Source of the DNA: Mobula hypostoma
Taxonomy: Eukaryota
DNA length: 64,000 nucleotides
NCBI RefSeq assembly: GCF_963921235.1
Contig: NC_086109.1
Location: forward strand, 1,364,001 to 1,428,000
Reading direction: 5' to 3'
Positions within the stretch are counted from its first letter, which is position 1. Each line of letters opens with the position of its first letter. Below are positions 9,249 through 55,660 of this stretch, piece by piece. The translations under genes were made by a program, and so were the position numbers. The notes under the pieces were generated by a model. It saw only the letters and a list, made by a program, of their open reading frames with translations, searched no databases and was not told the origin of the DNA.

Positions 9249-9315
9249 ATGCGGAAGTTCTCCTTGTGGATGGCTCCTTTCCTGTTTTGTGTTGTGGTCT
9301 GTGCCATCTATGTGG
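9249..9315 (+). CDS. CD2/SLAM-family gene 1, exon 1 (signal peptide MRKFSLWMAPFLFCVVVCAIYV)
   Basis: ATG with A at -3, basic N-terminus plus hydrophobic core, phase-1 donor G|GTAAG at 9316; paralogous to 37883-37949 (79% nt identity). Confidence 0.88.
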
Positions 9316-10589
9316 GTAAGTTCAGAGTTAGGAATTGACAAGGAAATGAGTGTCACACAACAATATCTTCTGAACGACTGTTGTCACTTTGAGACTCTGC
9401 TCTCCCATACTCTGACAGAGGAATCACTGTCCTCTCATTCCCTCACCCCTTTCTCCCCCAGTCCCACTCTTGCTCCCCCCACCCCAGTTCCTCCTACTTC
9501 CTTCCACCACCCTGCTTCTCCTTCCCACTTCTCCCTATCTCTCACCAGTAATTTCCTCCCCGTCATCCATTCTCCCTCTTCCTCCCACATATCCCAATAA
9601 ATGCATTCCCCCTCCTCCTCATGCACCCCCACTCCCTCCCTTCTTCAGCCTTCTGTTCCACCCTCACCCTCTGTCTGTCTCTCTCTTTTTTCCCACTGTC
9701 TTTGGTGAACTCTGGACTCATTCTCTCCTTCCCCATACTTTTTGAATTCAGAACCTTTCCACCCACCCCTCTCCATTTCTTCACTTTCTTTCTCCATCTC
9801 TGCCTCTGCTCCTCAATCCCTCTCTATCCCTCTCTCTATATCTTACTCTATACCCAGAGTCCAGCCCATCTCTCTCCTTGTTGGTATTTGACAGCATTTT
9901 ACTCACCTGTCTCCCTGCGAGAACCACCTCTCCCCATCCTGACACCAGCTCCCCATCATGATGGGTATTCAGATCATCACCTCTCTAAGGGATAATATTA
10001 ACAGACTCCAAATCTTGACATGCTCAGTACCAGGCCGAGACCTCACACACAGACACTCAACACAGTCTGTCTGGCACGGTTTCATAGTCAATGTGTATTA
10101 CAGTGAGTCGATTGACAAGGTCCCATGTCAGGCTGGTGAAGAAAACCCCTTGGGACCCAAGGGAGAGTGGGAGATTGGACCAAACTGAGTTTGGTGGGTG
10201 GGTGTTTGTATGACTGGAGTGGGGTCCACAGTGTCAGTGCCCCGCCCGTCACTCTGTTGTAGACAGCAATGGTTTCAAGCTGAATGTAGAGATATTTGTA
10301 CAGAGGTTGTCTGTGTGGATGCCAGTGAGAGGGTCAGTGTGGCCCAGGGAACTGTTAAACCGGTAATACTGGGTGATTTCATGTTCCTAATTTTCACTGG
10401 AATTCCCACAGTGTTAAGGAATTAAAGAAGGCAGAATTTTTCAGTGTCATCCCCATTTAACTAAACCTATCTGATTGCATCACTTCATTTCTTCTCATAT
10501 TTGTATGGATACCTAGAACAAATGAGCAAATATTGGCTACTGTCCAATGTTCAGCGAATCTCACTTCTGGCTAGAGAGGATATGTGGAC

Positions 10590-13500
10590 CTTTGTGAGGG
10601 TAGAAGCAAAAAGTAGTAAGGAGAAAAGTAAAAGTGGCAGGCCGACAAATCCAGGGCAAGCATCAAAAAGGGCCACTTTTCAACATAATTGTATAAGGGC
10701 TAAGAGAGTTGTAAAAGAGCGCCTGAAGGCTTTGGGTGTCAATGCAAGGAGCATTCGTAACAAGGTGGATGAATTGAAAGTGCAGATTGTTATTAATGAT
10801 TATGATATAGTTGGGATCACAGAGACATGGCTCCAGGGTGACCAGGGATGGGAGCTCAACGTTCAGGGATATTCAATATTCAGGAGGGATAGACATGAAA
10901 GAAAAGGAGGTGGGGTGGCGTTGCTGGTTAAAGAGGAGATTAACACAATAGAAAGGAAGGACATAAGCCGGGAAGATGTGGAATCGATATGGGTAGAGCT
11001 GCATAACACTAAGAGGCAGAAAACGCTGGTGGGAGTTGTGTACAGGCCACCTAACAGTAGTAGTGAGGTCGGGGATGGTACTAAACAGGAAATTAGAAAT
11101 GTGTGCAATAAAGGAACAGCAGTTATAATGGGTGACTTCAATCTACATGTAGAATGGGTGAACCAAATTGGTAAAGGTGCTGAGGAAGAGGATTTCTTGG
11201 AATGTATGCGGGATGGTTTTTTGAACCAACATGTCGAGGAACAAACTAGAGAGCAGGCTATTCTAGACTGGGTTTTGAGCAATGAGGAAGGGTTAATTAG
11301 CAATCTTGTCGTGAGAGGCCCCTTGGGTAAGAGTGACCATAATATGGTGGAATTCTTCATTAAGGTGGGGAGTGACATAGTTAATTCAGAAACAAAGGTT
11401 CTGAACTTAAAGAAGGGTAACTTTGAAGGTATGAGACGTGAATTAGCTAAGATGGACTGGCAAATGACACTTAAAGGATTGACAGAGGATATGCAATGGC
11501 AAGCACTTAAAGATTGCATGGATGAACTACAACAATTGTTCATCCCAGTTTGGCAAAAGAATAAATCAAGGAAGGTAGTGCACCCGTGGCTGACAAGAGA
11601 AATTAGGGATGGTATCAATTCCAAAGAAGAAGCATACAAATTAGCCAGAAAAAGTGGCTCACCTGAGGACTGGGAGAAATTCAGAGTTCAGTAGAGGAGG
11701 ACAAAGGGCTTAATTAGGAAGGGGAAAAAAGATATTGAGAGAAAACTGGCAGGGAACATAAAAACGGACTGTAAAAGCTTTTATAGATATGTAAAAAGGA
11801 AAAGACTGGTAAAGACAAATGTAGGTCCCCTACAGACAGAAACAGGTGAATTGATTATGGGGAGCAAGGACATGGCAGACCAATTGAATAATTACTTTGG
11901 TTCTGTCTTCACTAAGGAGGACATAAATAATCTTCCAGAAATAGTTGGGGACAGAGGGTCCAGCGAGAGGGAGGAACTGAGCGAAATACATGTTAGTAGG
12001 GAAGTGGTGTTAGGTAAATTGAAGGGATTAAAGGCAGATAAATCCCCAGGGTCAGATGGTCTGCATCCCAGAGTGCTTAAGGAAGTAGCCCAAGAAATAG
12101 TGGATGCATTAGTGATAATTTTTCAAAACTCTTTAGATTCTGGACTAGTTCCTGAGGATTGGAGGGTGGCTAATGTCACCCCACTTTTTAAAAAAGGAGG
12201 GAGAGAGAAACCGAGGAATTATAGACCGGTTAGCCTAATGTCGGTGGTGGGGAAACTGCTGGAGTCAGTTATCAAAGATGTGATAACAGCACATTTGGAA
12301 AGCAGTGAAATCATCAGACAAAGTCAGCATGGATTTGTCAAAGGAAAATCATGTCTGATGAATCTCATAGAATTTTTTGAGGATGTAACTAGTAGAGTGG
12401 ATAGGGGAGAACCAGTGGATGTGGTATATTTGGATTTTCAAAAGGCTTTTGACAAGGTCCCACACAGGAGATTAGTGTGCAAACTTAAAGCACATGGTAT
12501 TGGGGGTAAGGTATTGATGTGGATAGAGAATTGGTTAGCAGACAGGAAGCAAAGAGTGGGAATAAACGGGACCTTTTCAGAATGGCAGGCAGTGACCAGT
12601 GGGGTACCGCAAGGCTCAGTGCTGGGACCCCAGTTGTTTACAATATATATTAATGACTTGGATGAGGGAATTAAATGCAGCATCTCCAAGTTTGCGGATG
12701 ACATGAAGCTGGGCAGCAGTGTTAGCTGTGAGGAGGATGCTAAGAGGATGCAGGGTGACTTGGATAGGTTGGGTGAGTGGCCAAATTCATGGCAGATGCA
12801 ATTTAATGTGGATAAATGTGAAGTTATCCACTTTGGTGGTAAAAACAGGAAAGCAGATTATTATCTAAATGGTGGCCGATTAGGAAAAGGGGAGGTGCAA
12901 CGAGACCTGGGTGTCGTTATACACCAGTCATCGAAAGTGGGCATGCAGGTACAGCAGGCGGTGAAAAAGGCAAATGGTATGCTGGCATTCATAGCAAGAG
13001 GATTCGAGTACAGAAGCAGGGAGGTACTACTGCAGTTGTACAAGGCCTTGGTGAGACCACACCTGGAGTATTGTCTGAAGTTTTGGTCCCCTAATCTGAG
13101 GAAAGACATTCTTGCCATAGAGGGAGTACAAAGCAGGTTCATATGAAGAAAGACTGGATGAACTAGGCTTGTGCTCGTTAGAAGAATTTAGAAGATTGAG
13201 GGGAGATCTGATTGAAACGTATAAAATCCTAAAGGGATTGGACAGGCTAGATGCAGGAAGATTGTTCCCGATGTTGGGGAAGTCCAGAACAAGGGGTCAC
13301 AGTTTGAGGATACAGGGGAAGCCTTTTAGGACCGAGATGAGGAAAAACTTCTTCACACAGAGAGTGGTGAATCTGTGGAATTCTCTGCCACAGGAAACAG
13401 TTGAGGCCGGTTCATTGGCTATATTTAAGAGGGAGTTAGATATGGCCCTTGTGGCTAGGGGGATCAGAGGGTATGGAGGGAAGGCTAGTGCAGGGTTCTG

Positions 13501-13592
13501 AGTTGGATGATCAGCCATGATCATAATAAATGGCGGTGCAGGCTCGAAGGGCCAAATGGCCTACTCCTGCACCTATTTTCTATGTTTCTATG
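10590..13592 (+). mobile_element. Young CR1 LINE, near-complete ORF2 (APE endonuclease + RT), in gene 1 intron 1
   Basis: VNARSIRNKVDEL, GITETWL, GVVYRPP, MGDFN, LGKSDH; [26 protein letters not shown]; one premature TAG at 11692, a short deletion near 13145, and a (tttctatg) tail. Confidence 0.96.
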
Positions 13593-14214
13593 TAACATTA
13601 ATCTCCTCTCCTGCCTATATCAACAACCTGTGACAGAACCCACCAGGCCCTGCAGACGTGCATAACTCGGAGTTCCTCAGTACACCCAACTCTTCCACAT
13701 GGCTGAGTGTATTAGCATTCCCCACGTTGATCTCATTGACATTCACATAGAAACCATTCAACCAGGAACATCACTGACATCAGCTGACTCTTGGCATTAA
13801 TTCCTTCTTATGCTTGTGGGCTGATTCTGCCCTCTCCCTTACCACACCCTTGTTTGGAGAGTAAGTATAAAACTACACATATAAAATGTATAAAAGGAGT
13901 GTGTGTGAAGGAGGGAGGAAGAACTTAGAGGGAGTTATTTGTAGGAATAAGTTGGGATATGGATTAAAGTGAAGCAGAAATGTTCAAATTTCAAGAGGGA
14001 TTTTGATGAGGTGCATCACAAAAGGATATATCGATAATAAAATTGCAAGTAACATTTTGGAGTGGATCAATATGAGAATGGCTAACAGGACACAGAGAAA
14101 GGAGTGTAAAGGATTCATTTTCTGGTTGGTGAGATTTAACAAGTGTGTGCAGCATCTGTGAACCATAAAAGCTTAACAACCCTGAGAACAAGTGAAAGGT
14201 GTCAGATCCATACA

Positions 14215-15005
14215 CACTGTCACAGCGTGCACCCCCAGACAATGGATCACACAAAGAGTGCAACTCCCTCTGCAAGGTCCCATTACACATCCCCACAGCA
14301 TGGGTCAGACACAGAATGAAGCTCCCTCTACACCATTCCATCACACACTCACAGGACACGGGTCAGACACACAGCGAAGATCCCTCTAAATCGTCCATCA
14401 CACACTCCCAGGACATGGGTCAGACACAGAGTGAAGCTCCCTCTACACTGTCCCATCACACACTCCCAGTACACGGGTCAGACACAGAGCGAAGCTGCCT
14501 CTACACCGTCCCATCACACACTCCCTCTACACTGTCCCATCACACATTCCCAGGGCAAGGGTCAGACACAGAGTGAAACTCCCTCTACATCGTCCATCAC
14601 ACACTCCCAGGACACGGGTCAGACACAGAATGAAGCTCCCTCTACACTGTCCCATCACACACTCCCAGGTCACGGGTCAGACACAGAGTGAAACTCCCTC
14701 TACACAGTCCCATCACACACTCCCAGGACATGGGTCAGACACAGAGTGAAACTCCCTCTACACTGTCCCATCACACACTCCCAGGACACGGGTCAGACAC
14801 AGAGTGAAACTCCCTCTACACTGTCCCATCACACACTCCCAGGTCACGGGTCAGACACAGAGTGAAACTCCCTCTGCACTGTCCCATCACACACTCCCAG
14901 GACATGGGTCAGACACAGAGTGAAGCCCCCTCTACACTGTCCCATCACACACTTCCAGGACACGGGTCAGACACAGAGTGAAACTCCCTCTACACTGTCC
15001 CATCA
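14215..15005. repeat. 58-bp minisatellite, ~13 copies, in gene 1 intron 1
   Basis: Unit CTGTCCCATCACACACTCCCAGGACACGGGTCAGACACAGAGTGAAGCTCCCTCTACA, same as the array at 43768-52350. Confidence 0.95.
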
Positions 15006-15232
15006 GACTCCCGGGGCATAGTGTGGAGCAGCTTCACTGTGTGTTTAATTTATGTGTTGGGACAGCGTAGATGCACGTACCAAATTATCCTTCTGTAATG
15101 TAGAAATGGGGGCTGGGTCTCACACTGAGGTGGTAGGTGGACAATGGATTGCATGGCCTGTTGCTATTTCTGTGATTTTCCCATCTCTATTCCCTGAGCT
15201 CACTGGCTGACTGCCTCCTCTTGTCTCCACAG

Positions 15233-15553
15233 CTGAGACTACGGCTTCCCATTGTACGGTGAACGGAGTCACTGGTCAGTGGGTTATCTTACCGTCTGAG
15301 TTCCCAGTCACACAGGACATTACTGAGGTCCAGTGGAATCAGAAATCAAACAGTATCAGAATAGTGCGGTACCTGAATGGAAAGTCCAACTTTCCTGATT
15401 CCATTTATAAGCAACGGGTAACGTTTTATTCTGGGAACTTCTCTCTGAAGATCGAGAATCTACGGATCGAGGATGCTGGTGATTATGAGGTGACTTTTAG
15501 AAGAGGGAATTCAGGAACTGAATCTGCAAAAATAATCCGGCTGGAGGTGAACG
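15233..15553 (+). CDS. CD2/SLAM-family gene 1, exon 2 (IgV domain lacking the canonical B-F disulfide)
   Basis: Acceptor ctgactgcctcctcttgtctccacag, donor G|GTGAGT, 321 nt, phase 1-1. Translation has VNGVTGQWVILP, EVQW, FSLKIENLRIEDAGDYEV and IRLEV, i.e. V-set motifs without B/F cysteines, as in CD2-family N-terminal domains. Confidence 0.92.
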
Positions 15554-16899
15554 GTGAGTGGAGGGGCCGAGGTGTCACCAGATCCTGAAACAGCCCCAAT
15601 TAGTGGGTGAGGGGAGATCCTGTATGTTCTCCCATTTACAGCCCCCCATTGACTGCCAGTGGCCAGTGCTCGGCTCAGCCTCCCAGTGTAGAGGGGCTGA
15701 GACAGTGCCAGGTTGGGGGACATGCACACTACATTCACGGAGACTGGACCAGGTCCTGTGAGGGTTAAATGAGGAATCTCAGGGCTCCAAAACAGGGGAA
15801 GATAAGCGCATAGGAGGGGAGAATGGAGAGCCTGTTTGGGGTGTTGGAGTGGGCTGCATGGCTTAGTGACAGAGGAAGAAATTATGAAGGCTGCTCCCTC
15901 AAAGAACTCATGGGACTGAAGGGACCCCATACATCTCTTCCACCGGTTCTCTAGCGTTAATGGGATGCAGTTCAAATATGGAGCTTACTAAGGGGGAATT
16001 GAGCAGAAATCATATTGGAGTTTATTGGGAGAGAGAAACAGGGTTCCAGTGACTTTCAAACAGGCCGAGAACACAGCATCTTGAAATGAGCATTGTGCTA
16101 TAATGGATTCAGCAGGTGAGGCAGCAAATATAAATGGGTCAATGTTTCATTTTGGAGGCCCTGGAGGAGAACTGTCTTGTTATGGATTTCTTCTTGGGAT
16201 TGTTGGCAGATTAACTAACAAGAAAAAGGAAGAGCTGCATTCTGTTTGGAGAAATAAAAGCTGAAGTAATCGAGAGGATACAAGTCTACCAGTGAAAGAG
16301 CTTATGGGCCAGTGCAGAAAGGAGCGAGAGTGCAGTACTGTGCTGAGAAGAGATGGGCTGGATTGCTCCTCCATGGAGCTAGTCTAGATTATGGGCTGAA
16401 TGGCCTTCACTCTGCTGTGATTTCACTGCAGAATGGGCTCTGTCATCTGTGGTCCATAATGAGGACCTGTCTATGCTGGGTCACTCTCAGGTGTATAAGA
16501 GAAAGAATGATGATTCATGGGAGTGACAAAAGACATGGAAACTGAGAGAAGTTTGTGGAGCGATTAATCCCAGAGTCTGCGTCGAATCTGTATCCTCAGA
16601 GAGTGTTGAAGTAGGAATGAGACCGAGATGTTAGTCAGAAGGGCGAGGGCTCACCCAGAGCACTCCTGCCCCACTCTAGCAGCACCGTCTACAGGTGATG
16701 ACAGGCTCAGCTCCCCTTCAGAGTGGGCACGTGTGGCCTCCAGTTTAGGCTGTTCTGGCCTTTATATCTGAACCTCACTACGTGAGTATAGTTTACAATG
16801 TTTCAGAATAATAGTATTCAAAAGATTCTTACAACGATATCTGCATTAGGTCCCACTCATCCCAGGCTCCCAGTAAGACAGTTGTCAGCACATGCTGTC

Positions 16900-18070
16900 T
16901 CTCCGGGAACACACAAGAAATACAACAGCAGTAGGAGATGGCCTGTTCCACCATTCCGGTATAGATCATGGCTAATCTGTACAAGTCACAGCTCCCCTTC
17001 TCTGCCATCTCCCTATCTCCCTCTACCGCTTAATAGGTCAAGCATTTCTCCAGATCCACTTAGAACATAGAACAGTACAGCACAGTACAGGCCCTTCAGC
17101 CCACAATGTTGTGCTGACCCTCAAACCCTGCCTGCCATATAAGCCTCCAACTTAAATTCCTCCATATACCTGTCTAGTAGTCTCTTAAACTTCACTAGTG
17201 TATCTGCCTCCACCACTGACTCAGGCAGTGCATTCCACGCACCAACCACTCTCTGAGTAAAAAACCTTCCTCTAATATCCCTCTTGAACTTCCCACCCCT
17301 TACCTTAAAGCCATGTCCTCTTGTATTGAGCAGTGCTGCCCTGGGGAAGAGGCACTGGCTACCCACACTATCTATTCCTCTTAATACCTCTATCATGTAT
17401 CCTCTCATCCTCCTTCTCTCCAAAGAGTAAAGCACTAGCTCCCTTAATCTCTGATCATAATGCATACTCTCTAAACCAGGCAGCATCCTGGTAAATCTCC
17501 TCTGTACCCTTTCCAATGCTTCCACATCCTTCCTATAGTGAGGCAACCAGAACTGGACACAGTACTCCAAGTGCCTAACCAGAGTTTTATAGAGCTGCAT
17601 CATTACATTGTGACTCCTAAACCCTATCCCTCGACTTATGAAAGCTAACACCCCATAAGCTTTCTTAATTACCCTATCCACCTGCTCCCTTCCTGTTCCT
17701 GAATTCCACTCATATTGACTCAAAAGAGGATCCTGCTACATTACCCACCCTTTCTGTAGCTGTAATAGTATCCCTGACCAGTAATGCTACCCCTCCTCCC
17801 CTTTTTCCACCCTCTCTATCCCTTTTAAAGCACTGAAATCCAGGAATATTGAGAATCCATTCCTGCCCTGGTGCCATCCAAGTCTCTGTAATGGCCACTA
17901 CATCATAATTCCATGTATGTATCCAAGCTCTCAGTTCATCACCTTTGTTCCTGATGCTTCTTGCATTGAGGTACACACATTTCAGCCCTTCTACCTTACT
18001 GTCTTTGCACCGTTTATTCTGCTTCTCTTTCCTCAAAGCCTCTCTGTATGTTAGATCTGGCTTCCACCAC
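16900..18070 (-). mobile_element. CR1 fragments (3' RT end with tails, joined to an endonuclease fragment)
   Basis: ORF 17121-17723 LYKTLVRHLEYCVQFW...FFTQRVVGAWNALP; ORF 17710-18036 YLNARSIRNKGDEL...AITETW. Confidence 0.9.
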
Positions 18071-18181
18071 CCACTGTCTCCAGGAATACCAGATATACAC
18101 TACCTAATGCTAGAATAAATTCCAACATACTGCAATGTTAAATGACCAGCCCCTTAGCTTACAGTTATGTCCCATTGTTCT

Positions 18182-18605
18182 AGCCCTTACATACTATTCA
18201 TATTCTATACCTTCACAGTATGGTCCGGGTCAGTTTTGACCCGGCCCAAGAATCCCCTCATAACAAGTGTCTATACCAAATTTTTGAACCACAGATCTAT
18301 TTAGAATGTATAAGTAGCCTATCTGACATTAATAAATGGGTGATTAATCCTTAATTAATGTTTCAGAAATCTAAAATCCATTTCAATAGATATGGGTCAA
18401 ATTTGACCCGGAACAACCTCAATGTACAAAAATTTGTAGCACCTGTACAAAAGTATAAAATTTTAAAATATTTTCATATTTGCGCATTTTGGGTCACTTT
18501 AGGAATAGTCATCAAATTTCAGCTAAAAAAATGGCACTTAGGATGTCTTTATTGCTGTCAAATGTCAAAACGGGTCAAATTTGACCCAAACATTATGTAT
18601 GGGCT
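18182..18605. mobile_element. piggyBac-like MITE (~420 bp) with imperfect TIRs
   Basis: Left end AGCCCTTACATA versus right end reverse complement AGCCCATACATA; three internal palindromes GGGTCA-N4-TGACCC at ~18227, 18394 and 18572; TTAA target sites are not preserved. Confidence 0.5.
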
Positions 18606-19399
18606 GGAGTCTGTCACTGGTGTAAACAGCACATTAACTCTGTTACAGCCCATTGGAGACATATCAATGAATACACCATCCCTTCTCCTCCTGAACACCC
18701 TGGAATTCAGAAACAAACTACGTAACCACTTTTGGTAGGATGAACCTCTGCAGGAATTACCCAAGTGAATCTCCAGTGGTCCACTGTCACTCTGAGACAA
18801 GTGTGATCTCACCAACACAGAGTACAATTGCAATAAAATTCCTCATTTTTAAACTCCAGTCCATTCACATTCGCCAAAATACAGTTTTCTTTCCTAACTG
18901 TTTGGTGGACCTGTCTGCTGGCACTTTTTAAGGACTCCTGCACTTGAATCACTCAATTGGTCTGCAATTCACTCACTTGCAGTCTCGCTCCATTCAAAGA
19001 TAACCTGCCTTTTCATTCCTCTAACTGGTGCACAGCCTCTCCATTCCCCGTATTATACTCAACTTTGCACTTTGCTCATCTTCTCTGCTCACCTTTCTTT
19101 CTCAATGCCCAAACTCAAAGCCCATGTGAGGTACACACATCATGGTACAGGACATTTTTACTTTTACAAGGCACTCCACAGCAGACGTAATTTGAACATG
19201 GGCCACAATAGCAGTCCAAGTCCAAATGTGTGTAGAGCCCTGAAAAGATATTGATGATCCGTCCTTGCAAAAGCCTTCCCTGCACAACAGATGGAAAATG
19301 AACTGAGAAATTAGACCTCTGGGGTTATGACTCTCCAGTGCCATAAGGTGGTCATCAGCTGTTTAAAAGACTGTAAGACATATGAATACACAGGGTATG

Positions 19400-22310: not shown

Positions 22311-22374
22311 CCTCTGGAGAACGGATTTAAGTTAATTCAGAGATACTGGAGATTATGGAGGTATTGGAAATTTT

Positions 22375-22790
22375 GAGCAACAGATACAAACTGCTGCAGG
22401 AATTCAGCAGGTCAGGCAGGGGAATAAACACTCGACATTTTAGGCAAAGACTCTTAATGAGGACTGGAAATGAAGGAGTCAGAGGTCCGATAAAAAGATC
22501 GGGAGAGGGAAAGGAGTACAAGCTGGCTGGTGATTGGTGAGACTAGGTGAGAGGGACAATAGGTTGGTAAGGAACATGGGGGTTAGGGGAATGATCTAAG
22601 GAGGTGTGGTGTGAGAGTTGTAAGACGGACAGGGGTGAAGAATAAATGGAACGGGTAAGAGCTGATGGGAAGGACCAGATGGAATATGACACGTTGCTTC
22701 TCCAACAAGGGTTTTACCTCATTGTGCCAGTGGACACCATGGAATATCTTGTCGGTGTGGGAACTGGAAGTCTGCGATGGGTTAATTAAT
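22375..22790 (-). mobile_element. Old Penelope-like element 3' remnant
   Basis: LLEKQRVIFHL resembles the GIY-YIG end LEEQHLIFHL; the terminal repeat resembles that at 31161-31257. Confidence 0.55.
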
Positions 22791-23143
22791 TCAGCATTGT
22801 GTTTGGTGCACATATTGTGATCTGAAGGGTTTGGTACTGTGCTGTACTGTTCCATGTGTGGTGTAGACAAAGATTTACACAGGTCTCACCTAAGTCCTGT
22901 CTCTCCTGTGCAGCAGAGTTGTACTGGATGGAGCAGAGTCTGTAAGGGGTGACCAGAGGGGTCTAAGTGGTATTGGAAGGAAAGCGATGTCGGAGAGTGA
23001 TAGAAGGTGTGATTTGAGGGGACTGACGCACTGAGTTGGTGTGATAGGGAGATTACTCCAGCCTGAGGTGGGATGGATACGTTAATTCCATTTCTCGGGG
23101 AGCGTGAGGACGGTATTAATCACGGAATCTTCTCTCGTTCCAG

Positions 23144-23343
23144 ATACAGTACCTGATAAAATAACAACACCATGCACAGCAGCACACAGTACAACGAAAA
23201 CAGATGGGAAAATAAATAATATGTCAGGAGACGGTTCAAAGGAAAAAATGCGGAATACAGCAATCCCATTGGTACCTCAGAAAATGAGTCTACTGTTCGG
23301 ACTGGCAGTGATGGTAACCCTCCTGATTTCCCTCTCGCTGTGA
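23144..23343 (+). CDS. Candidate terminal exon of gene 1: Ser/Thr-rich stalk + C-terminal GPI-anchor signal
   Basis: Acceptor tattaat...tcttctctcgttccag, phase 1 matching exon 2; 66 open codons DTVPDKITTPCTAAHSTTKT...MRNTAIPLVPQKMSLLFGLAVMVTLLISLSL then TGA, i.e. a hydrophobic tail ending directly at the stop. Confidence 0.72.
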
Positions 23344-23891: not shown

Positions 23892-23897
23892 AATAAA
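23892..23897 (+). terminator. Candidate polyadenylation signal (AATAAA) for gene 1
   Basis: First AATAAA I found after the stop (~550 nt downstream), with a U-rich stretch following; not verified. Confidence 0.35.
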
Positions 23898-37780: not shown

Positions 37781-37882
37781 CAGAACGGGAGCTGGGTGGC
37801 TATCATGGGAATTCTCTTCCTGCTCATTTCCTGACTCTTTCCAATAATATCTAAGCCTCCAGACTGCCAGAAGAGCTTCAAG

Positions 37883-37949
37883 ATGTGGAAGTTCTCCATT
37901 AGGATGGTCCCCTCCCTACTTAGTGTTGTCATCTGCGCCATCTATGTGG
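37883..37949 (+). CDS. CD2/SLAM-family gene 2, exon 1 (signal peptide MWKFSIRMVPSLLSVVICAIYV)
   Basis: ATG in AAGATG context, hydrophobic core, phase-1 donor G|GTAAG at 37950; same length as gene 1 exon 1. Confidence 0.88.
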
Positions 37950-43440: not shown

Positions 43441-43767
43441 CTGCTTCATGGCACAGCAACAGTGTTTCACTGATTTATTGGAGTCCGTTGTACAAGTAAC
43501 ATGGCAACAGTTAAAGAAGGACCAGAAATGACGACGTTTCTAGAGGGCCTGTTACAAGGAGAATCATCAAAGTTTATTGTTGAAAAAAAGCACATAACAC
43601 AGATGTATCATGTTGGTGTGGATCAATGTTTGGTTGGTGAACAGGAAACAGAGAAGTACTGTAGGTGTAAATAGGGTGCTCCGGGCCGGTGAGATGTAGC
43701 CTGTGCAGTGCAATAGCTGAAAAGCCCAAAACCTCAACTATCCTGAAAAACAAGGACTAAGTGTCAC

Positions 43768-46700
43768 TGCCTCTACACTGTCCCATCACACACTCCCTCT
43801 ACACTGTCCCATCACACACTCCCTCTACACTGTCCCATCACACCCTCCCTCTACACTGTCCCGTCACACACTACCAGGACACGGGTCAGACACAGAGTGA
43901 AGCTCCCTCTACAGTGTCCCATCACACACTCCCAGGACACGGGTCAGACACAGAGTGAAGCTCCCTCTACACTGTCCCATCACACACTCCCAGGACACGG
44001 GTCAGACACAGAGTGAAGCTCCCTCTACACTGTCCCATCACACACTCCCAGGACACGGGACAGACACAGAGTGAAACTCCCTCTACATTGTCCCATCACA
44101 CACTCCCAGGAAACGGGTCAGACACAGAGTGAAACTCCCTCTACATTGTCCCATCACACACTCCCAGGAAACGGGTCAGACACAGAATGAAGCTCCCTCT
44201 ACACTGTCCCATCACACACTCCCAGGACAGGGGTCAGACGCAGAGTGAAGCTCCCGCTACACTGTCCCATCACACACTCCCAGGACACGGGACAGACACA
44301 GAGTGAAGCTCCCTCTACACTGACCCATCACACACTCCCAGGGCACGGGTCAGACACAGAGCGAAGCTCCCTCTACACTGTCCCATCACACACTCCAAGG
44401 ACACGGGTCAGACACAGAGTGAAGCTCCCTCTACACTGTCCCATCACACACTCCCAGGGCACGGGTCAGACACAGAGTGAAGCTCCCTCTACACTGTCCG
44501 ATCACACACTGCAAGGACACGGGTCAGGCACAGAGTGAAACTCCCTCTACAGTGTCCTATCACACATTCCCAGGGTACTGGTCAGACACAGAGTGAAACT
44601 CCCTCTACACTGTCCCATCACACACTCCCAGGACACGGGTCAGACACAGAGTGAAGCTCCATCTACACTGCCCAATCACACACTCCCAGGACACGGGTCA
44701 GACACACAGTGAAGCTCCCATAACACGGTCCCATCACACACTCCCAGGACACGGGTCAGACACAGAGTGAAACTCCCTCTATACTGTCCCATCACAGACT
44801 CCCAGGACACGGGTCAGACGCAGAGTGAAACTCCCTCTAGACTCTCCCATCACACACTCCCAGGGTCAGACACAGAATGAAACTCCCTCTACACTATCTC
44901 ATCACACACTCCCAGGACACGGGTCAGACACAGAGTGAAGCTCCCACTGCACTGTCCCATCACACACTCCCAGGACACGGGTCAGACACAGAGTGAAACT
45001 CCCTCTACATTGTCCAATCACACACTCCCAGGAAACGGGTCAGACACAGAGTGAAACTCCCTCTACATTGTCCCATCACACACTCCCAGGAAACGGGTCA
45101 GACACAGAGAGAAGCTCCCCCTACAGTGTCCCATCACACACTCCCAGGACATGGGTCAGAGACAGAGTGAAACTCCCTCTACACTGTCCCATCACACACT
45201 CCCAGGACACGGGTCAGACACAGAGTGAAGCTCGCTCTACACTGTCCTATCACACACTCCCAGGACACGGGTCAGACACAGAATGAAGCTCCCTCTACAC
45301 TGTCCCATCACACACTCCCAGGACACGGGTCAGACACAGAGTGAAACTCCCTCTACATTGTCCCATCACACACTCCCAGGAAACGGGTCAGACACAGAGT
45401 GAAACTCCCTCTACATTGTCCCATCACACACTCCCAGGAAACGGGTCAGACACAGAGCGAAGCTCCCTCTACAGTGTCCCATCACACACTCCCAGGACAC
45501 GGGTCAGACACAGAGTGAAACTCCCTCTACACTGTCCCATCACACACTCCCAGGACACGGGTCAGACACAGAGTGAAACTCCCTCTACATTGTCCCATCA
45601 CACACTCCCAGGAAACGGGTCAGACACAGAGTGAAACTCCCTCTACATTGTCCCATCACACACTCCCAGGAAACGGGTCAGACACAGAGTGAAACTCCCT
45701 CTACATTGTCCCATCACACACTCCCAGGAAACGGGTCAGACACAGAGCGAAGCTCCCTCTACAGTGTCCCATCACACACTCCCAGGACACGGGACAGACA
45801 CAGAGTGAAGCTCCCTCTACACTGACCCATCACACACTCCCAGGGCACGGGTCAGACACAGAGCGAAGCTCCCTCTACACTGTCCCATCACACACTCCAA
45901 GGACACGGGTCAGACACAGAGTGAAGCTCCCTCTACACTGTCCCATCACACACTCCCAGGGCACGGGTCAGACACAGAGCGAAGCTCCCTCTACACTGTC
46001 CCATCACACACTCCCAGGACGCGGGTCAGACACAGAGTGAAGCTCCCTCTACACTGCCCAATCACACACTCCCAGGACACGGGTCAGACACACAGTGAAG
46101 CTCCCATAACACGGTCCCATCACACACTCCCAGGACACGGGTCAGACACAGAGTGAAACTCCCTCTATACTGTCCCATCACAGACTCCCAGGACACGGGT
46201 CAGACGCAGAGTGAAACTCCGTCTAGACTCTCCCATCACACACTCCCAGGGTCAGACACAGAATGAAACTCCCTCTACACTATCTCATCACACACTCCCA
46301 GGACACGGGTCAGACACAGAGTGAAGCTCCCACTGCACTGTCCCATCACACACTCCCAGGACACGGGTCAGACACAGAGTGAAACTCCCTCTACATTGTC
46401 CCATCACACACTCCCAGGAAACGGGTCAGACACAGAGTGAAACTCCCTCTACATTGTCCCATCACACACTCCCAGGAAACGGGTCAGACACAGAGCGAAG
46501 CTCCCTCTACAGTGTCCCATCACACACTCCCAGGACACGGGTCAGACACAGAGTGAAGCTCGCTCTACACTGTCCCATCACACACTCCCAGGACACGGGT
46601 CAGACACAGAGTGAAGCTCGCTCTACACTGTCCTATCACACACTCCCAGGACACGGGTCAGACACAGAATGAAGCTCCCTCTACACTGTCCCATCACACA

Positions 46701-49700
46701 CTCCCAGGACAGGGGTCAGACGCAGAGTGAAGCTCCCGCTACACTGTCCCATCACACACTCCCAGGACACGGGACAGACACAGAGTGAAGCTCCCTCTAC
46801 ACTGTCCCATCACACACTCCAAGGACACGGGTCAGACACAGAGTGAAGCTCCCTCTACACTGTCCCATCACACACTCCCAGGGCACGGGTCAGACACAGA
46901 GCGAAGCTCCCTCTACACTGTCCCATCACACACTCCCAGGACGCGGGTCAGACACAGAGTGAAGCTCCCTCTACACTGTCCGATCACACACTGCAAGGAC
47001 ACGGGTCAGGCACAGAGTGAAACTCCCTCTACAGTGTCCTATCACACATTCCCAGGGTACGGGTCAGACACAGAGTGAAACACCCTCTACACTGTCCCAT
47101 CACACACTCCCAGGACACAGGTCAGACACAGAGTGAAGCTCCATCTACACTGCCCAATCACACACTCCCAGGACACGGGTCAGACACACAGTGAAGCTCC
47201 CATAACACGGTCCCATCACACACTCCCAGGACACGGGTCAGACACAGAGTGAAACTCCCTCTATACTGTCCCATCACAGACTCCCAGGACACGGGTCAGA
47301 CGCAGAGTGAAACTCCCTCTAGACTCTCCCATCACACACTCCCAGGGTCAGACACAGAATGAAACTCCCTCTACACTATCTCATCACACACTCCCAGGAC
47401 ATGGGTCAGACACAGAGTGAAGCTCCCACTGCACTGTCCCATCACACACTCCCAGGACACGGGTCAGACACAGAGTGAAACTCCCTCTACATTGTCCCAT
47501 CACACACTCCCAGGAAATGGGTCAGACACAGAGTGAAACTCCCTCCACATTGTCCCATCACACACTCCCAGGAAACGGGTCAGACACAGAGAGAAGCTCC
47601 CCCTACAGTGTCCCATCACACACTCCCAGGACATGGGTCAGACACAGAGTGAAACTCCCTCTACACTGTCCCATCACACACTCCCAGGACACGGGTGAGA
47701 CACAGAGTGAAGCTCGCTCTACACTGTCCTATCACACACTCCCAGGACACGGGTCAGACACAGAATGAAGCTCCCTCTACACTGTCCCATCACACACTCC
47801 CAGGACACGGGTCAGACACAGAGTGAAACTCCCTCTACATTGTCCCATCACACACTCCCAGGAAACGGGTCAGACACAGAGTGAAACTCCCTCTACATTG
47901 TCCCATCACACACTCCCAGGAAACGGGTCAGACACAGAGCGAAGCTCCCTCTACAGTGTCCCATCAGACACTCCCAGGACACGGGTCAGACACAGAGTGA
48001 AGCTCCCTCTACACTGTCCCATCACACACTCCCAGGACACGGGTCAGACACAGAGTGAAGCTCCCTCTACACTGTCCCATCACACACTCCCAGGACACGG
48101 GTCAGACACAGAGTGAAACTCCCTCTACATTGTCCCATCACACACTCCCAGGAAACGGGTCAGACACAGAGTGAAACTCCCTCTACATTGTCCCATCACA
48201 CACTCCCAGGAAACGGGTCAGACACACAGTGAAGCTCCCATAACACGGTCCCATCACACACTCCCAGGACACGGGTCAGACACAGAGTGAAACTCCCTCT
48301 ATACTGTCCCATCACAGACTCCCAGGACACGGGTCAGACACAGAGTGAAACTCCCTCTAGACTCTCCCATCACACACTCCCAGGGTCAGACACAGAATGA
48401 AACTCCCTCTACACTATCTCATCACACACTCCCAGGACACGGGTCAGACACAGAGTGAAGCTCCCTCTGCACTGTCCCATCACACACTCCCAGGACACGG
48501 GTCAGACACAGAGTGAAACTCCCCCTACATTGTCCCATCACACACTCCCAGGAAACGGGTCAGACACAGAGTGAAACTCCCTCTACATTGTCCCATCACA
48601 CACTCCCAGGAAACGGGTCAGACACAGAGTGAAACTCCCTCTACATTGTCCCATCACACACTCCCAGGAAACGGGTGAGACACAGAGCGAAGCTCCCCCT
48701 ACAGTGTCCCATCACACACTCCCAGGACATGGGTCAGACACAGAGTGAAACTCCCTCTACACTGTCCCATCACACACTCCCAGGACACGGGTCAGACACA
48801 GAGTGAAGCTCGCTCTACACTGTCCTATCACACACTCCCAGGACACGGGTCAGACACAGAATGAAGCTCCCTCTACACTGTCCCATCACACACTCCCAGG
48901 ACACGGGTTAGACACAGAGTAAAACTCCCTCTACATTGTCCCATCACACACTCCCAGGAAACGGGTCAGACACAGAGTGAAACTCCCTCTACATTGTCCC
49001 ATCACACACTCCCAGGAAACGGGTCAGACACAGAGCGAAGCTCCCTCTACAGTGTCCCATCACACACTCCCAGGACACGGGTCAGACACAGAGTGAAGCT
49101 CGCTCTACACTGTCCCATCACACACTCCCAGGACACGGGTCAGACACAGAGTGAAGCTCGCTCTACACTGTCCTATCACACACTCCCAGGACACGGGTCA
49201 GACACAGAAAGAAGCTCCCTCTACACTGTCCCATCACACACTCCCAGGACAGGGGTCAGACGCAGAGTGAAGCTCCCGCTACACTGTCCCATCACACACT
49301 CCCAGGACACGGGACAGACACAGAGTGAAGCTCCCTCTACACTGACCCATCACACACTCCCAGGGCACGGGTCAGACACAGAGCGAAGCTCCCTCTACAC
49401 TGTCCCATCACAGACTCCCAGGACACGGGTCAGACACAGAGTGAAACTCCCTCAAGACTCTCCCATCACACACTCCCAGGGTCAGACACAGAATGAAACT
49501 CCCTCTACACTATCGCATCACACACTCCCAGGACACGGGTCAGACACAGAGTGAAGCTCCCTCTGCACTGTCCCATCACACACTCCCAGGACACGGGTCA
49601 GACACAGAGTGAAACTCCCTCTACATTCTCCCATCACACACTCCCAGGAAACGGGTCAGACACAGAGTGAAACTCCCTCTACATTGTCCCATCACACACT

Positions 49701-52350
49701 CCCAGGAAACGGGTCAGACACAGAGTGAAACTCCCTCTACATTGTCCCATCACACACTCCCAGGAAACGGGTGAGACACAGAGCGAAGCTCCCCCTACAG
49801 TGTCCCATCACACACTCCCAGGACATGGGTCAGACACAGAGTGAAACTCCCTCTACACTGTCCCATCACACACTCCCAGGACACGGGTCAGACACAGAGT
49901 GAAGCTCGCTCTACACTGTCCTATCACACACTCCCAGGACACGGGTCAGACACAGAATGAAGCTCCCTCTACACTGTCCCATCACACACTCCCAGGACAC
50001 GGGTTAGACACAGAGTAAAACTCCCTCTACATTGTCCCATCACACACTCCCAGGAAACGGGTCAGACACAGAGTGAAACTCCCTCTACATTGTCCCATCA
50101 CACACTCCCAGGAAACGGGTCAGACACAGAGCGAAGCTCCCTCGACAGTGTCCCATCACACACTCCCAGGACACGGGTCAGACACAGAGTGAAGCTCGCT
50201 CTACACTGTCCCATCACACACTCCCAGGACACGGGTCAGACACAGAGTGAAGCTCGCTCTACACTGTCCTATCACACACTCCCAGGACACGGGTCAGACA
50301 CAGAATGAAGCTCCCTCTACACTGTCCCATCACACACTCCCAGGACAGGGGTCAGACGCAGAGTGAAGCTCCCGCTACACTGTCCCATCACACACTCCCA
50401 GGACACGGGACAGACACAGAGTGAAGCTCCCTCTACACTGACCCATCACACACTCCCAGGGCACGGGTCAGACACAGAGCGAAGCTCCCTCTACACTGTC
50501 CCATCACACACTCCAAGGACACGGGTCAGACACAGAGTGAAGCTCCCTCTACACTGTCCCATCACACACTCCCAGGGCACGGGTCAGACACAGAGCGAAG
50601 CTCCCTCTGCACTGTCCCATCACACACTCCCAGGACGCGGGTCAGACACAGAGTGAAGCTCCCTCTACACTGTCCGATCACACACTGCAAGGACACGGGT
50701 CAGGCACAGAGTGAAACTCCCTCTACAGTGTCCTATCACACATTCCCAGGGTACGGGTCAGACACAGAGTGAAACTCCCTCCACACTGTCCCATCACACA
50801 CTCCCAGGACACGGGTCAGACACAGAGTGAAGCTCCATCTACACTGCCCAATCACACACTCCCAGGACACGGGTCAGACACACAGTGAAGCTCCCATAAC
50901 ACGGTCCCATCACACACTCCCAGGACACGGGTCAGACACAGAGTGAAACTCCCTCTATACTGTCCCATCACAGACTCCCAGGACACGGGTCAGACGCAGA
51001 GTGAAACTCCCTCTAGACTCTCCCATCACACACTCCCAGGGTCAGACACAGAATGAAACTCCCTCTACACTATCTCATCACACACTCCCGGGACACGGGT
51101 CAGACACAGAGTGAAACTCCCTCTACATTGTCCCATCACACACTCCCAGGAAACGGGTCAGACACAGAGAGAAGCTCCCCCTACAGTGTCCCATCACACA
51201 CTCCCAGGACACGGGTCAGACATAGAATGAAGCTCCCTTTACACTGTCCCATCACACACTCCCAGGACACAGGTCAGACACAGAGTGAAACTCCCTCTAC
51301 AGTGTCCCATCACACACTCCCAGGACATGGGTCAGACACAGAGTGAAACTCCCTTTTAACTGTCAGATCACACACTGCAAGGACACGGGTCAGACACAGA
51401 GTGAAACTCCCTCTACATTGTCCCATCACACACTCCCAGGAAACGGGTCAGACACAGAATGAAGCTCCCTCTACACTCTCCCATCACACACTCCCAGGAC
51501 AGGGGTCAGACGCAGAGTGAAGCTCCCGCTACACTGTCCCATCACACACTCCCAGGACACGGGACAGACACAGAGTGAAGCTCCCTCTACACTGACCCAT
51601 CACACACTCCCAGGGCACGGGTCAGACACAGAGCGAAGCTCCCTCTACACTGTCCCATCACACACTCCAAGGACACGGGTCAGACACAGAGTGAAGCTCC
51701 CTCTACACTGTCCCATCACACACTCCCAGGGCACGGGTCAGACACAGAGCGAAGCTCCCTCTACACTGTCCCATCACACACTCCCAGGACGCGGGTCAGA
51801 CACAGAGTGAAACTCCCTCTATACTGTCCCATCACAGACTCCCAGGACACGGGTCAGACACAGAGTGAAACTCCCTCTAGACTCTCCCATCACACACTCC
51901 CAGGGTCAGACACAGAATGAAACTCCCTCTCCACTATCTCATCACACACTCCCAGGACACGGGTCAGACACAGAGTGAAGCTCCCTCTGCACTGTCCCAT
52001 CACACACTCGCAGGACACGGGTTAGAAACAGAGTGAAGTTCCCTCTACACTGTCCCATCACACACTCCCAGGACACGGGTCAGATACAGAGTGAAACTCC
52101 CTCTACACTGTCCCATCACACACTCCCAGGACACGGGTCAGACACAGAGTGAAATTCCCTCTACACTGTCCCATCACACACTCGCAGGACACGGGTTAGA
52201 AACAGAGTGAAGTTCCCTCTACAGTGGCCTATCATACACTGCCAGGGCAGAGGTTAGATCAGAGTGAAGCTCCCTCTGCATTGACCCACTACATTTTCCC
52301 AAGGCACGGTTTAGACACAGAGTGAAGCTCTCTCTACACTGTCCCCTCAC
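43768..52350. repeat. 58-bp minisatellite, ~148 copies (8.6 kb), with higher-order structure, in gene 2 intron 1
   Basis: Same unit as 14215-15005; recurring variant cassettes and 52-bp deletion units; 26-bp partial units at the left edge. Confidence 0.98.
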
Positions 52351-52705
52351 ACCCCCATGACATGGTTCAGAGCAGCTTCATTATGTGTGTAATCTGCATG
52401 GTGGGACTATGTAGATGCAGCTACCTTGTCTTCCCTCACCATGTTCACCCTCCCCGTCTCAGACTTGTCCACCGAAATCTGGTTGCAGACTTCAACTTCC
52501 GTCTTCGGAGACGGCTACAGATAGTAAACAGTCTGTTCACCCTTGGCCTCGCTGTGTGATTTAGGAACTGAGAGCTGGATCTCTCAAATGGGTAGAGTTC
52601 AGACAATGGGCCGCATGGCGTGCTGTGTGTCTGTGACTCTCTGAGCTCCGATACTTCCTCTGGTCACTGAGCTCACCTGCTGACTGTCTCGTCTTGTCTC
52701 CTCAG

Positions 52706-53026
52706 CTGGGACTGGGGCTTCCGGTACCACTGTGTACACAATCCCTGGGAAACGTGTCACCTTGCTGTCTGGGATCACAGCCGGACCGCACATTGCTGAG
52801 GTTGAGTGGAAACGGTCATCGCCCAGAACCACGTTAGTGCGATACTCGAAAACCAACACTAAATATTTTGAATCCATTTACACGGGACGGATTAAGCTTA
52901 ATCTCAGTAACTTCAATCTGGAAATCCTGGATCTATGGAAAAATGATACTGGTGATTTTGAGGTTATTTTTACAAAAGATAATTCAGGACTTGAAAACAG
53001 AAAGCTAATCCGACTGGAGGTGTACG
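52706..53026 (+). CDS. CD2/SLAM-family gene 2, exon 2 (cysteine-less IgV domain)
   Basis: Acceptor ctgactgtctcgtcttgtctcctcag, donor G|GTAAGT, 321 nt, phase 1-1; GKRVTLLS, EVEW, FNLEILDLWKNDTGDFEV, IRLEVY; gap-free alignment to gene 1 IgV. Confidence 0.93.
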
Positions 53027-53599
53027 GTAAGTGAGACATCGCCAACAGGCCTGGGTTTCACCCGTTCCTGAAACTTCCCTAAATCATGAGTGAGGGCAGA
53101 TCCTGTAAGTTTCCCTGTTTGCTGAAACACACAGACTGCCTGTGTCGAGAGCTGAGCTCAGGTTCCTGATGCAGTGAGGCTGAAGCAGTAGGAGGCAGGT
53201 AAATACGTCTACCACATCCCCAGGGTCTGGGCTACAGGCTGAGAAACATCAACATTGCTCCAAGGCCTGAGGAGCTGAGCTCACAGGAGACTGGGATGAA
53301 GGGATAGCTCGATGGGTTGGGTGAAGCCAGTGTGGCTGGCCGCATGGTTTATATCTGTGGGTGACAGAGGAAGGCTTGCTGAAGACTGTTCCTAGAAATT
53401 CAAGTGGGACTGTGAAGACCTGGATTGCTGTTCTCCTGGCTCTCTACTATTAATGGGGTGATTAACAGGAGCCACAGATTAAAAGTGAGGCAGGAAAGCA
53501 CGAACCAGTGAGGTAAAATGGAGCCAAAATCAGTGGTGAATTTAAAGGGAGAAGGAAACATTAGCTTGCTGAGTTTAAACTGAGAGGGGAACGTATTTG

Positions 53600-54490
53600 T
53601 GGTGAGATTAAACAGAGTGGGAATGGGGTTCAAGTGAGATTAAAGGGATTGGGAAATGGGGTTTCATGAGATTAAAGGGAGCAGACAATGGGATTCGGGT
53701 GAGATTAAAGGGAGTGGGCAACGGGTTCAGGTAAAATTAAACGGAGTGGGCATTAGGGTTTGGGTAAGATTAAATGGAGTGGACAACGCGGTTCAGGTGA
53801 GATTAAAGGCAGTGGGCAGCAGGGTTTGGGTGAGATTAAAGGGAGTGGGTAATGGGATTCAGATGAGATTAAAGGGAGTGGGCAACGGGGTTCGGCTAAG
53901 ATGAAATGGAGCAGGCAATAGGGCTGAGTAAGATTAAAGGGAGCGGGCAAACAGAGTTCAGGTAAAATGAAATGAAATGGGTAATGGGGTCAGGTAAGAT
54001 TAAATGAAACGGGTAATAGGGTTGAGGTGGGGTAAAAGGGAGTGGGCAGCAGGATTTGGGTGAGGTTAAAGGGAGTGGGTAATGTGGTTCAGGTGAGATT
54101 AAAGGGAGTGGATAATGGGGTTCAAGAGAGATTAAAGGGAGCGGGTAATGGAGTTCCGGTGAGATGAAAGGGAGTTGTTAATAAGGTTCAGGAGAGATTA
54201 AAGGGAGTGGGCAATGGGTTTCAGGTGAGGTTAAGGGAAGGGGTAATGGGGTTCAGGTAAGATTAAATGAAATGGGTAATGGGGTTCAGGTAAGATGAAA
54301 GGGAGTGGGCAATGGGGTTCAAGTGTGATTAAAGGGAGTGGGCAATGGGGTTGAGATGAGATTAAACGGAGTGAGTAATAGGGTTCCAATAAGATTAAAG
54401 GGAGTGGGCAATAGGTTTCAGGTGAGATTAAAGGGAGCAGACAATGGGGTTCAGGAGAGATTAAATGGAGTGCGCAATAGGGCGGTGAGA
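53600..54490. repeat. 33-bp G-rich minisatellite, ~27 copies, in gene 2 intron 2
   Basis: Unit gagattaaagggagtgggcaatggggttcaggt, period 33. Confidence 0.92.
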
Positions 54491-54769
54491 AGAGATGCAT
54501 TCAGTTTGGCGGAATAAGAGATGACATAATTGTGAGGGTAGGTCTGTGTGGAGAATAAGGGACAGGGCAATGGGATGGATTTCTCCTTCGTAGACCCAGT
54601 CCAGCCGATGGGCTGAATGGCCTTCCTGCTGTGACCACACTATAATATTCCGCACAGTTCTGGGATCATCTGATACTGTGAGAGTGTGACATTTCAGTCG
54701 ACTGCGTGGGGTCTCGGTGGAAGGTGTGGTCTGGTCTGATAATTGATCTTCAAAGAAAGATGGTTGGAA

Positions 54770-55330
54770 GCCAAAGGCACAGAGGCTAGAGTGGGAGTGG
54801 GATGGAGAATTAAAGTCAGAGCGTCTGCGTTGTCAGGTTGATCCTAGCACCTTAATGGAAGTGTTCTGCAAGGTGTTCATTTTATCAATGTCTGGTTTCT
54901 CCAGTGAGGAGGTAACCCGATGTGGTTACCCAGGCTGGAAGAGGGCGATTGAATCAGTGCTTCACCTGATAGGACCCCTGTCCCTGCATTTAGGGGAAGG
55001 AAGAGGTGAAAAGTCAGGTGTTGCCCCTCTTGTGGTTACAGGAGAAGGTGGTGTAGGAGCAGTGTGGGGGTGGAGACGGAGGAGTGGAGCACTGTACTCC
55101 CAGACTGCTCGGAAAGGGAAGATGGTCCTGGTTCATCAAACAGCAGAGCTTAAGGACGTTGGTACGAGTGTGAAGTCAGATGTGTTCAGTGATGGGACCT
55201 CGTTGATGTTAGTGGAGTTGTCAGGGTACGATCCAGTGGACGTGGTGGTTGGTGGGGTGAAACCGTGAAATTATCCCCTTCTTCTGGTGGGGAACGGTTG
55301 GTGGCGGTAAGGGCAGAGGTGGGAGAAATG
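54770..55330 (-). mobile_element. Old Penelope-like remnant
   Basis: Weak similarity of minus-strand translations to the PLE RT/GIY-YIG linker. Confidence 0.35.
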
Positions 55331-55369
55331 GAACATGCAGAGATTAAAGTTGCATCTTCTCCGTCTCAG

Positions 55370-55660
55370 AGCTGGTGTCAGGAGCAAACATCGTGGTTCA
55401 GAACTGCACTGGGACTTGTAACCTTAAGCTGACCTGCTCCGTGACTTCGGGCGACGCCATCAGCTTCACGTGGCAGAGGGAAGGAGAAATTGTGGGGAAT
55501 GACAGCACCCATCAGCTCGGGGGACTCGGAGAGACGCTACTGGTTCGTCAGACAGCAGAGGCTAAGGACGTTCCGTACAACTGTGAGGTCGGAAACCCTC
55601 TCAACACAGTGGTGGCAGGTATCAAACTGGAGCGGCACGCCTGTAAACTGCGCTCATCCG
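55370..55660 (+). CDS. CD2/SLAM-family gene 2, exon 3 (IgC2 domain)
   Basis: Acceptor catcttctccgtctcag, donor G|GTGAGT, 291 nt, phase 1-1; NCTGTCNLKLTCSV...FTW...YNCEVGNP...HAC matches the SLAM/CD2 C2 pattern (TC...LTC...W...YxC...NP...C). Confidence 0.92.

Follow-up and report, generated by a model that had tools for sequence, protein, structure and literature searches.

Members of the CD2/SLAM family such as CD2 and CD58, or 2B4 and CD48, are thought to have been born by duplication and bind each other through the faces of their V-type immunoglobulin (IgV) domains. One mammalian CD58 isoform lacks a cytoplasmic tail and is tethered to the membrane by glycosylphosphatidylinositol (GPI). CD48 (SLAMF2), a further tail-less family member, is also GPI-linked in mammals (PMC4892432). 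In elasmobranchs, slamf genes have been mentioned in passing as residing on the shark chromosome of the major histocompatibility complex (PMC10751288, 2023). Here, we describe a 64-kb stretch of the genome of the lesser devil ray, Mobula hypostoma (contig NC_086109.1, positions 1,364,001 to 1,428,000), which is referred to in full as the window. Our analysis makes it likely that the window contains two tandem CD2/SLAM paralogues on the same strand: gene A, a duplicate devoid of the C2-type immunoglobulin (Ig) domain, and gene B, which has the build of CD48 and is probably GPI-anchored. A pair of this kind had been proposed earlier from the letters of the window (hereafter the original prediction), together with the statement that such clusters are poorly described in cartilaginous fishes. 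On the latter point, our literature search found no paper on the CD2 family in elasmobranchs beyond the passing mention cited above, but elasmobranch genomes already have large numbers of annotated SLAM-family genes.

Exon structure and family membership of the two genes

A mechanical search of the window for 321-nt exons with AG/GT borders and an open phase-1 frame returned open reading frames (ORFs) of long interspersed nuclear elements (LINEs) and two Ig-like exons, the IgV exons of genes A and B (Table 1). Exons 1-3 of gene B agree letter for letter with the RefSeq protein XP_062922442.1 ("T-lymphocyte surface antigen Ly-9-like", 292 aa, assembly GCA_963921235.1), and the 96 whole codons of its C2 exon (55372-55659) are 100% identical to residues 131-226. 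Measured from its start codon, the gene as called extends over 37,182 bp. Its fourth and last exon ends ~11 kb past the window, and was compared as protein. This location fits with the absence of any convincing hydrophobic exon 3' of 55660 within the window, where exons for a transmembrane segment or an immunoreceptor tyrosine-based switch motif (ITSM) were sought. The protein is composed of a signal peptide, the IgV domain, the C2 domain, a Ser/Thr-rich stalk and a hydrophobic C-terminus, and has no cytoplasmic tail. An AlphaFold model of XP_062922442.1, obtained with 19 relatives, displays two confident Ig domains, a disordered segment (residues 223-271) and a helix (residues 273-291) with which the protein ends. 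An ORF in intron 2 of gene B (54747-55265) was considered as a further exon and rejected, having neither a Pfam match nor a homologue.

Gene A starts with the same kind of leader and IgV exons, and ends with a terminal exon that is preceded by the phase-1 acceptor ttctctcgttccag, closes with a TGA stop (23341-23343) and is followed by an AATAAA signal at 23892. The translation of 23146-23340 is 92% identical to residues 228-292 of XP_062922442.1. Moreover, the codon created at the junction of the IgV and terminal exons of gene A, GAT (Asp), encodes the residue found at the border between C2 and stalk in the gene B model. The predicted product consists of 195 residues and comprises signal peptide, IgV domain, stalk and hydrophobic end. 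No C2 exon was detected in 15554-33000 by tblastn with the gene B C2 domain and seven two-domain relatives at E-values of up to 5, and a sensitive blastn comparison of 15554-24500 with 53027-64000 revealed no C2-like sequence in copy A. The last collinear match between the two copies sits ~740 bp 5' of the C2 exon of gene B and is followed in copy A by a LINE fragment. As all junctions are in phase 1, the reading frame of gene A survives the loss of the C2 exon. Besides XP_062922442.1, no protein with the IgV domain or the terminal exon of gene A was present in the searched collections, so that gene A appears to be unannotated. Thus, gene A is apparently an unannotated paralogue without a C2 exon.

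Neither IgV domain has the canonical inter-sheet disulfide between strands B and F. The IgV domain of gene B (IgV B) contains no cysteine at all, and that of gene A (IgV A) a single non-canonical one at residue 7, with Leu and Glu-Val at the B- and F-strand positions. The C2 domain of gene B has four cysteines at positions conserved across ray relatives and a fifth one. We therefore had to divide the proposed signature of a cysteine-less IgV plus C2: it describes gene B, and does not describe gene A with its one cysteine and missing C2 exon.

In Pfam, IgV A scored 38.8 bits for V-set and 24.8 bits for Receptor_2B4, both above the gathering cut-offs (26 and 21 bits, respectively), and IgV B scored 21.8 bits for V-set, which is below the cut-off. 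The C2 domain scored 38.3 bits for Ig_3 in XP_062922442.1; taken by itself, the C2 exon is generic. Among solved structures, IgV A matched SLAMF6 first (1.6e-6), followed by SLAMF5 and a CD48/CD2 chimera, and IgV B matched CD48 and CD2 best. A profile built from 27 ray and shark IgV domains, A and B included, gave full-domain matches to CD48 (1.6e-13), SLAMF5 (1.6e-11), SLAMF6, CD2, 2B4 and CD58; matches to pIgR and CEACAM were partial or summed. The fold comparisons pointed in the same direction. The AlphaFold model of IgV A (pLDDT 86.7) had SLAMF5, SLAMF8, CD48 (twice), 2B4 and CD2 (twice) as its seven best Swiss-Prot matches (TM-score by query 0.80-0.90), and the 14 best for the XP_062922442.1 model were all CD2, Ly-9, CD48, SLAMF5, SLAMF1, SLAMF8 or 2B4. 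In the Atlas, XP_062922442.1 lay next to the clusters 'CD48 antigen' (the top one, 0.96) and 'SLAM family member 5'.

By sequence, A and B are nearest to RefSeq models that bear the names SLAM family 5/8/9-like, Ly-9-like or CD48-like and come from Hemitrygon, Hypanus, Pristis, Mobula birostris, skates and sharks. The batoid relatives among them (Hemitrygon akajei, Pristis pectinata, Mobula birostris, Amblyraja radiata and others) are 45-56% identical in IgV and 55-60% in C2, and share with A and B motifs such as GNFSLEI..L...D.G.YEV and, with the C2 domain of B, the four cysteines. V-only SLAM-like proteins are also annotated in other rays (e.g. P0017, P0035 and P0038). Unlike A and B, most batoid relatives have a transmembrane segment with a tail carrying TxYxx(V/I), the ITSM pattern of SLAM receptors, and their IgV branches are much shorter. 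Taken together, Pfam, solved structures, profile, fold and batoid homologues agree, and support that the domains of A and B belong to the CD2/SLAM family and not to another branch of the immunoglobulin superfamily, as had been predicted.

Table 1 Features of the gene A and gene B loci, in window coordinates
Feature	Position	Strand	Evidence or remark
Gene A 5' flank within duplicated unit	5419-9248	+	patches homologous to 33454-37882; interrupted by 40-bp minisatellite
Gene A exon 1, start codon and signal peptide, 67 nt, phase-1 end	9249-9315	+	AAGATG, gtaagt donor
Gene A intron-1 58-bp minisatellite, ~13 units	14230-15019		TRF; collinear with gene B array
Gene A exon 2, IgV without canonical disulfide, 321 nt, phase 1-1	15233-15553	+	Pfam, PDB and fold matches
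Gene A terminal exon, Ser/Thr-rich stalk, hydrophobic C-terminal segment and stop	23144-23343	+	similarity to XP_062922442.1
Assembly gap, 474 N, intergenic, 4.4 kb 5' of gene B ATG	32974-33447		N run
Gene B 5' flank within duplicated unit	33454-37882	+	homologous to 5419-9248; LINE inserted 34548-35850
Gene B exon 1, signal peptide, 67 nt	37883-37949	+	identical to XP_062922442.1 residues 1-22
Gene B intron-1 58-bp minisatellite, ~148 units, 8.6 kb, 90% matches	43765-52375		TRF, self-BLAST
Gene B exon 2, cysteine-free IgV, 321 nt, phase 1-1	52706-53026	+	100% match to XP_062922442.1 residues 23-129
Gene B exon 3, C2-type Ig, 291 nt, phase 1-1	55370-55660	+	Pfam Ig_3, Ig_2, I-set
Gene B last intron (start), full of LINE fragments	55661-64000	+	gene range; reverse-transcriptase/endonuclease ORFs
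Collinear match A/B	5419-5662 / 33454-33696		self-BLAST
Collinear match A/B	6038-6111 / 34154-34228		self-BLAST
Collinear match A/B	8729-8801 / 37545-37618		self-BLAST
Collinear match A/B	9080-9476 / 37713-38112		self-BLAST
Collinear match A/B	9897-10348 / 38152-38600		self-BLAST
Collinear match A/B	~15100-15706 / 52573-53189		self-BLAST
Collinear match A/B	16353-16420 / 54570-54634		self-BLAST

Common origin and divergence of the gene pair

The two genes resemble each other well beyond their coding parts. Both leader exons begin at AAGATG, encode a hydrophobic signal peptide and end at the donor ATGTGG|gtaagttc, and are 79% identical at the nucleotide level. Upstream of both IgV exons, a common gctgactg branch-point-like motif and a polypyrimidine tract precede the AG acceptor, and a GT donor follows each exon. 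Self-comparison of the window yielded a series of collinear matches with 69-82% identity that runs from 5419/33454 to 16420/54634 (Table 1). In both copies, intron 1 carries the 58-bp minisatellite at the corresponding site; between the two consensus units, 2 of 58 positions differ, both by CpG-to-TpG changes. Promoter motifs (ISRE, GAS, ETS and TATA) common to both copies were not found in the conserved 5' flanks. Finally, a terminal exon combining stalk and hydrophobic tail is confined to A and B; 0 of the 195 relatives that we fetched have one.

A maximum-likelihood tree of 51 IgV domains left A and B unjoined in the free search. Their end branches are long (1.09 and 0.80 changes per site for A and B, respectively, at a median of 0.12), that of A being the second-longest in the tree. 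When A and B were constrained to be sisters, the log-likelihood rose 9.8 above that of the free tree, and the approximately unbiased (AU) test gave a p-AU of 0.76, although long-branch pull may contribute to this outcome. Judging from the genomic collinearity, the shared terminal exon and the AU test, A and B are most simply explained by a single duplication that took place in the devil ray lineage or in recent ancestors of it, and our data support this origin. Gene A would afterwards have lost its C2 exon, LINEs would have inserted, and the minisatellite of gene B would have grown 11-fold.

These results bear out most of what the original prediction had said about the architecture of the locus. 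The two same-strand genes with their 67- and 321-nt exons, phase-1 junctions, branch points, intronic flanks and minisatellite are all found at the expected coordinates by exon search, self-BLAST and TRF, and a single origin is backed by the collinear introns, the terminal exon unique to the pair and the better sister tree. The duplicated unit had been drawn from at least 5400/33448 to beyond the IgV exon. Homology over this range is real, but the unit reaches as far as the terminal exon of gene A, and position 33448 is simply the first base after an assembly gap. The genes had also been described as hidden among transposons. Gene B corresponds to a public protein model and is thus not hidden, whereas gene A is absent from the collections that we searched.

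Comparison of the two IgV exons revealed 67% identity in DNA and 40% in protein (dN 0.46, dS 0.37, ratio ~1.2). This dS is matched by the introns on either side, whose Jukes-Cantor distances are 0.20-0.40. The exon is hence of the same age as the DNA around it, and it is the amino-acid changes that are in excess. The flanking introns accumulated 22 gap events in 1259 nt, or ~1 per 57 nt. At this rate, 5.6 insertions or deletions (indels) are expected in the 321 nt of the IgV exons, where we observed 0 (P = 0.004). In neutral simulations, the IgV frame stayed free of stops in 2.6% of cases if all change was placed on one lineage, and in 12% if half was. All seven invariant residues of the family are kept in both IgV A and IgV B. 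The IgV differences, sorted by strand on the model of A, showed no obvious concentration on one sheet in this comparison of two sequences. The anchor exon behaves differently from neutral sequence: change at the neutral intron rate would bring its protein identity to 46-64%, and the 92% identity was reached in 0 of 20,000 simulations. Neutrality, which a ratio near 1 might indicate, is thus less likely, and we take the binding domain to have changed fast, perhaps adaptively, on a conserved anchor.

Membrane anchor, rival explanations and proposed function

The products of A and B both end at their hydrophobic segment, and the ITSM-like motifs seen in relatives occur in neither. Their C-termini are made up of small residues, a polar spacer and a hydrophobic end of 18-19 residues, with no tail behind it. 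Small residues and a short polar spacer ahead of a hydrophobic end are typical of GPI signals. In a language-model comparison, the terminal exon came closest to fungal GPI wall proteins (score 0.85), which we take as a lead only. Since A and B are without a signalling tail, their build resembles that of a CD48-type ligand rather than that of a SLAM-type signalling receptor. This qualifies the label "receptor" used in the original prediction. We further noted that a single cysteine (TTPCTAA) is kept in both stalk exons (23146-23340 and XP_062922442.1 residues 228-292). The free cysteines, i.e. those of the stalks, the one in IgV A and the fifth one in C2, could allow disulfide-linked dimers.

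Several points weigh against the reading of A and B as a tandem, probably lipid-anchored pair. The C-terminal hydrophobic segment is probably a GPI-anchor signal, but this assignment derives from the shape of the sequence alone. A tail-less transmembrane anchor, with signalling through a partner chain or a role in adhesion only, would be the alternative, and is in line with the 19-residue terminal helix of the AlphaFold model and with Atlas scores below 0.9 for the GPI lead. However, no residue follows the hydrophobic stretch, no charged residue lies inside it, and the residues N-T-A, with S/G/D further upstream, precede the short polar spacer, so that we consider a transmembrane anchor unlikely. 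The adjacency and orientation of A and B, in turn, rest on a scaffold join across the assembly gap, an N run of estimated length that separates the two genes. If this join were wrong, dispersed paralogues would have been placed side by side and the tandem pair would be an artefact. Yet both flanks of the gap are purine-rich (65% in the last 35 nt before it and 83% after it), as is the homologous site of copy A (5392-5412, and 79% over 5392-5500), and homology to copy A resumes 6 nt past the gap. A mis-join thus appears very unlikely to us. There are weak hints that the gap is a sequencing drop-out inside one GA-rich tract, and not a join of unrelated contigs. It lies between the stop of gene A and the ATG of gene B and touches no exon, for which reason the continuity of the reading frames is unaffected. 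What the gap does obscure is where the duplicated unit begins on its 5' side; in copy A, the corresponding position (5392) comes directly after the tail of a LINE insertion.

The status of gene A was open to a further objection, as no annotated product with more than 50% identity to its own was present in a collection of 5.8 billion proteins. Gene B might be the working gene, whereas gene A, having lost its C2 exon and ceased to be expressed, might be a relic of the duplication that is decaying or silent. The lack of a protein model in any searched collection, the missing exon, an IgV dN/dS of ~1.2 that is compatible with neutrality and the exceptionally long IgV A branch are what one would expect of such a relic. 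On the other hand, the three exons of gene A are all open and have canonical splice sites, its coding sequence has remained without indels next to introns that have not, its IgV domain keeps the invariant residues, scores above that of B for V-set and is modelled with confidence, its terminal exon is nearly that of B, and V-only proteins are annotated in other rays. On balance, we regard a relic as rather unlikely. The rate pattern itself can be read in other ways as well: relaxed constraint would likewise account for a dN/dS near 1 over the whole domain, and because the terminal exon of gene B was available as protein only, gene conversion of the 3' end, instead of purifying selection, could lie behind the 92% identity of the anchor. 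We retain the reading of a tandem CD2/SLAM pair with a CD48-like build.

By analogy with CD48 and CD58, A and B may act as cell-surface ligands or adhesion partners. Both predicted proteins would be small, glycosylated and lipid-tethered to the outer leaflet of the membrane. Their IgV faces would bind SLAM- or CD2-type receptors with ITSM tails that are encoded elsewhere in the same chromosomal cluster. Gene A would represent a minimal, one-domain version of the ligand, and the binding domains would have diverged fast with the anchor being kept. A more far-reaching proposal is that A and B form a lineage-specific, lipid-anchored CD48-like pair, whose IgV domains were driven apart by positive selection and in which the V-only gene A serves as a functional minimal ligand; we consider this doubtful. 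If true, positive selection on IgV might reflect an arms race driven by pathogens, or else the two proteins could be on the way to becoming a decoy and a ligand, or a new heterophilic pair, for ITSM-bearing SLAM receptors of the same megabase-scale ray cluster.

Window content and comparison with known systems

The 64-kb window has a G+C content of 48% and a CpG observed/expected ratio of 0.36. It is densely packed with LINE fragments, for which Pfam confirmed ORFs of reverse transcriptase and endonuclease, and contains no non-transposon genes other than A and B; scans with Rfam and for tRNAs were both empty. An ORF in a LINE-rich stretch (59405-60004) matches the Pfam domain ALKBH8_N (8e-12), which is probably cargo of the local LINE family and not a host gene. 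Two LINE reverse-transcriptase segments, 12318-13593 in intron 1 of gene A and 34548-35850 in the 5' flank of gene B, are 92.6% identical. Being located at non-homologous sites and far more alike than the duplicated host DNA (~75%), they stem from a younger LINE family that inserted independently at the two sites once the duplication had occurred.

Two further minisatellites are found in one copy each. The 5' flank of gene A carries a 40-bp repeat (6449-8171, ~42 units, 92% matches) that has no counterpart in copy B and causes long, spurious ORFs on the minus strand, the largest of 590 aa. Copy B alone has a 33-bp repeat (53601-54482, ~27 units, 75% matches), which is situated in intron 2 of gene B. 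A minus-strand ORF at 32963-33496 was set aside as an artefact, as it runs through the N run of the gap. The purine-rich, GA-type tract around the gap extends over 32938-32973 and 33448-33560.

What our analysis adds is an unlisted V-only and probably lipid-anchored member of the expanded cluster of SLAM/CD2 genes in this ray, gene B being listed already. The locus offers a clean example of tandem duplication followed by exon loss, in which the binding domain changed fast and the membrane anchor was retained. It should be useful for the annotation of elasmobranch immune loci and for studying how CD48-type ligands and SLAM-type receptors diversified in the oldest jawed vertebrates, while existing knowledge of the CD2/SLAM family is left unchanged.

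In comparison with known systems, gene B resembles CD48 in build. Both have a signal peptide, an IgV domain without the inter-sheet disulfide, a C2 domain and a hydrophobic C-terminus with no tail. Unlike CD48, gene B has an exon for a long, Ser/Thr-rich stalk that separates the C2 domain from the anchor, and its sequence identity to mammalian CD48 is only ~20-30%. Gene A departs further from CD48, as the C2 domain is absent altogether. With regard to the receptor-ligand pairs of the family, CD2 and 2B4 have signalling tails and A and B do not. At the level of sequence, A and B resemble CD2/CD58 and 2B4/CD48 in being duplicates with strongly diverged IgV domains.

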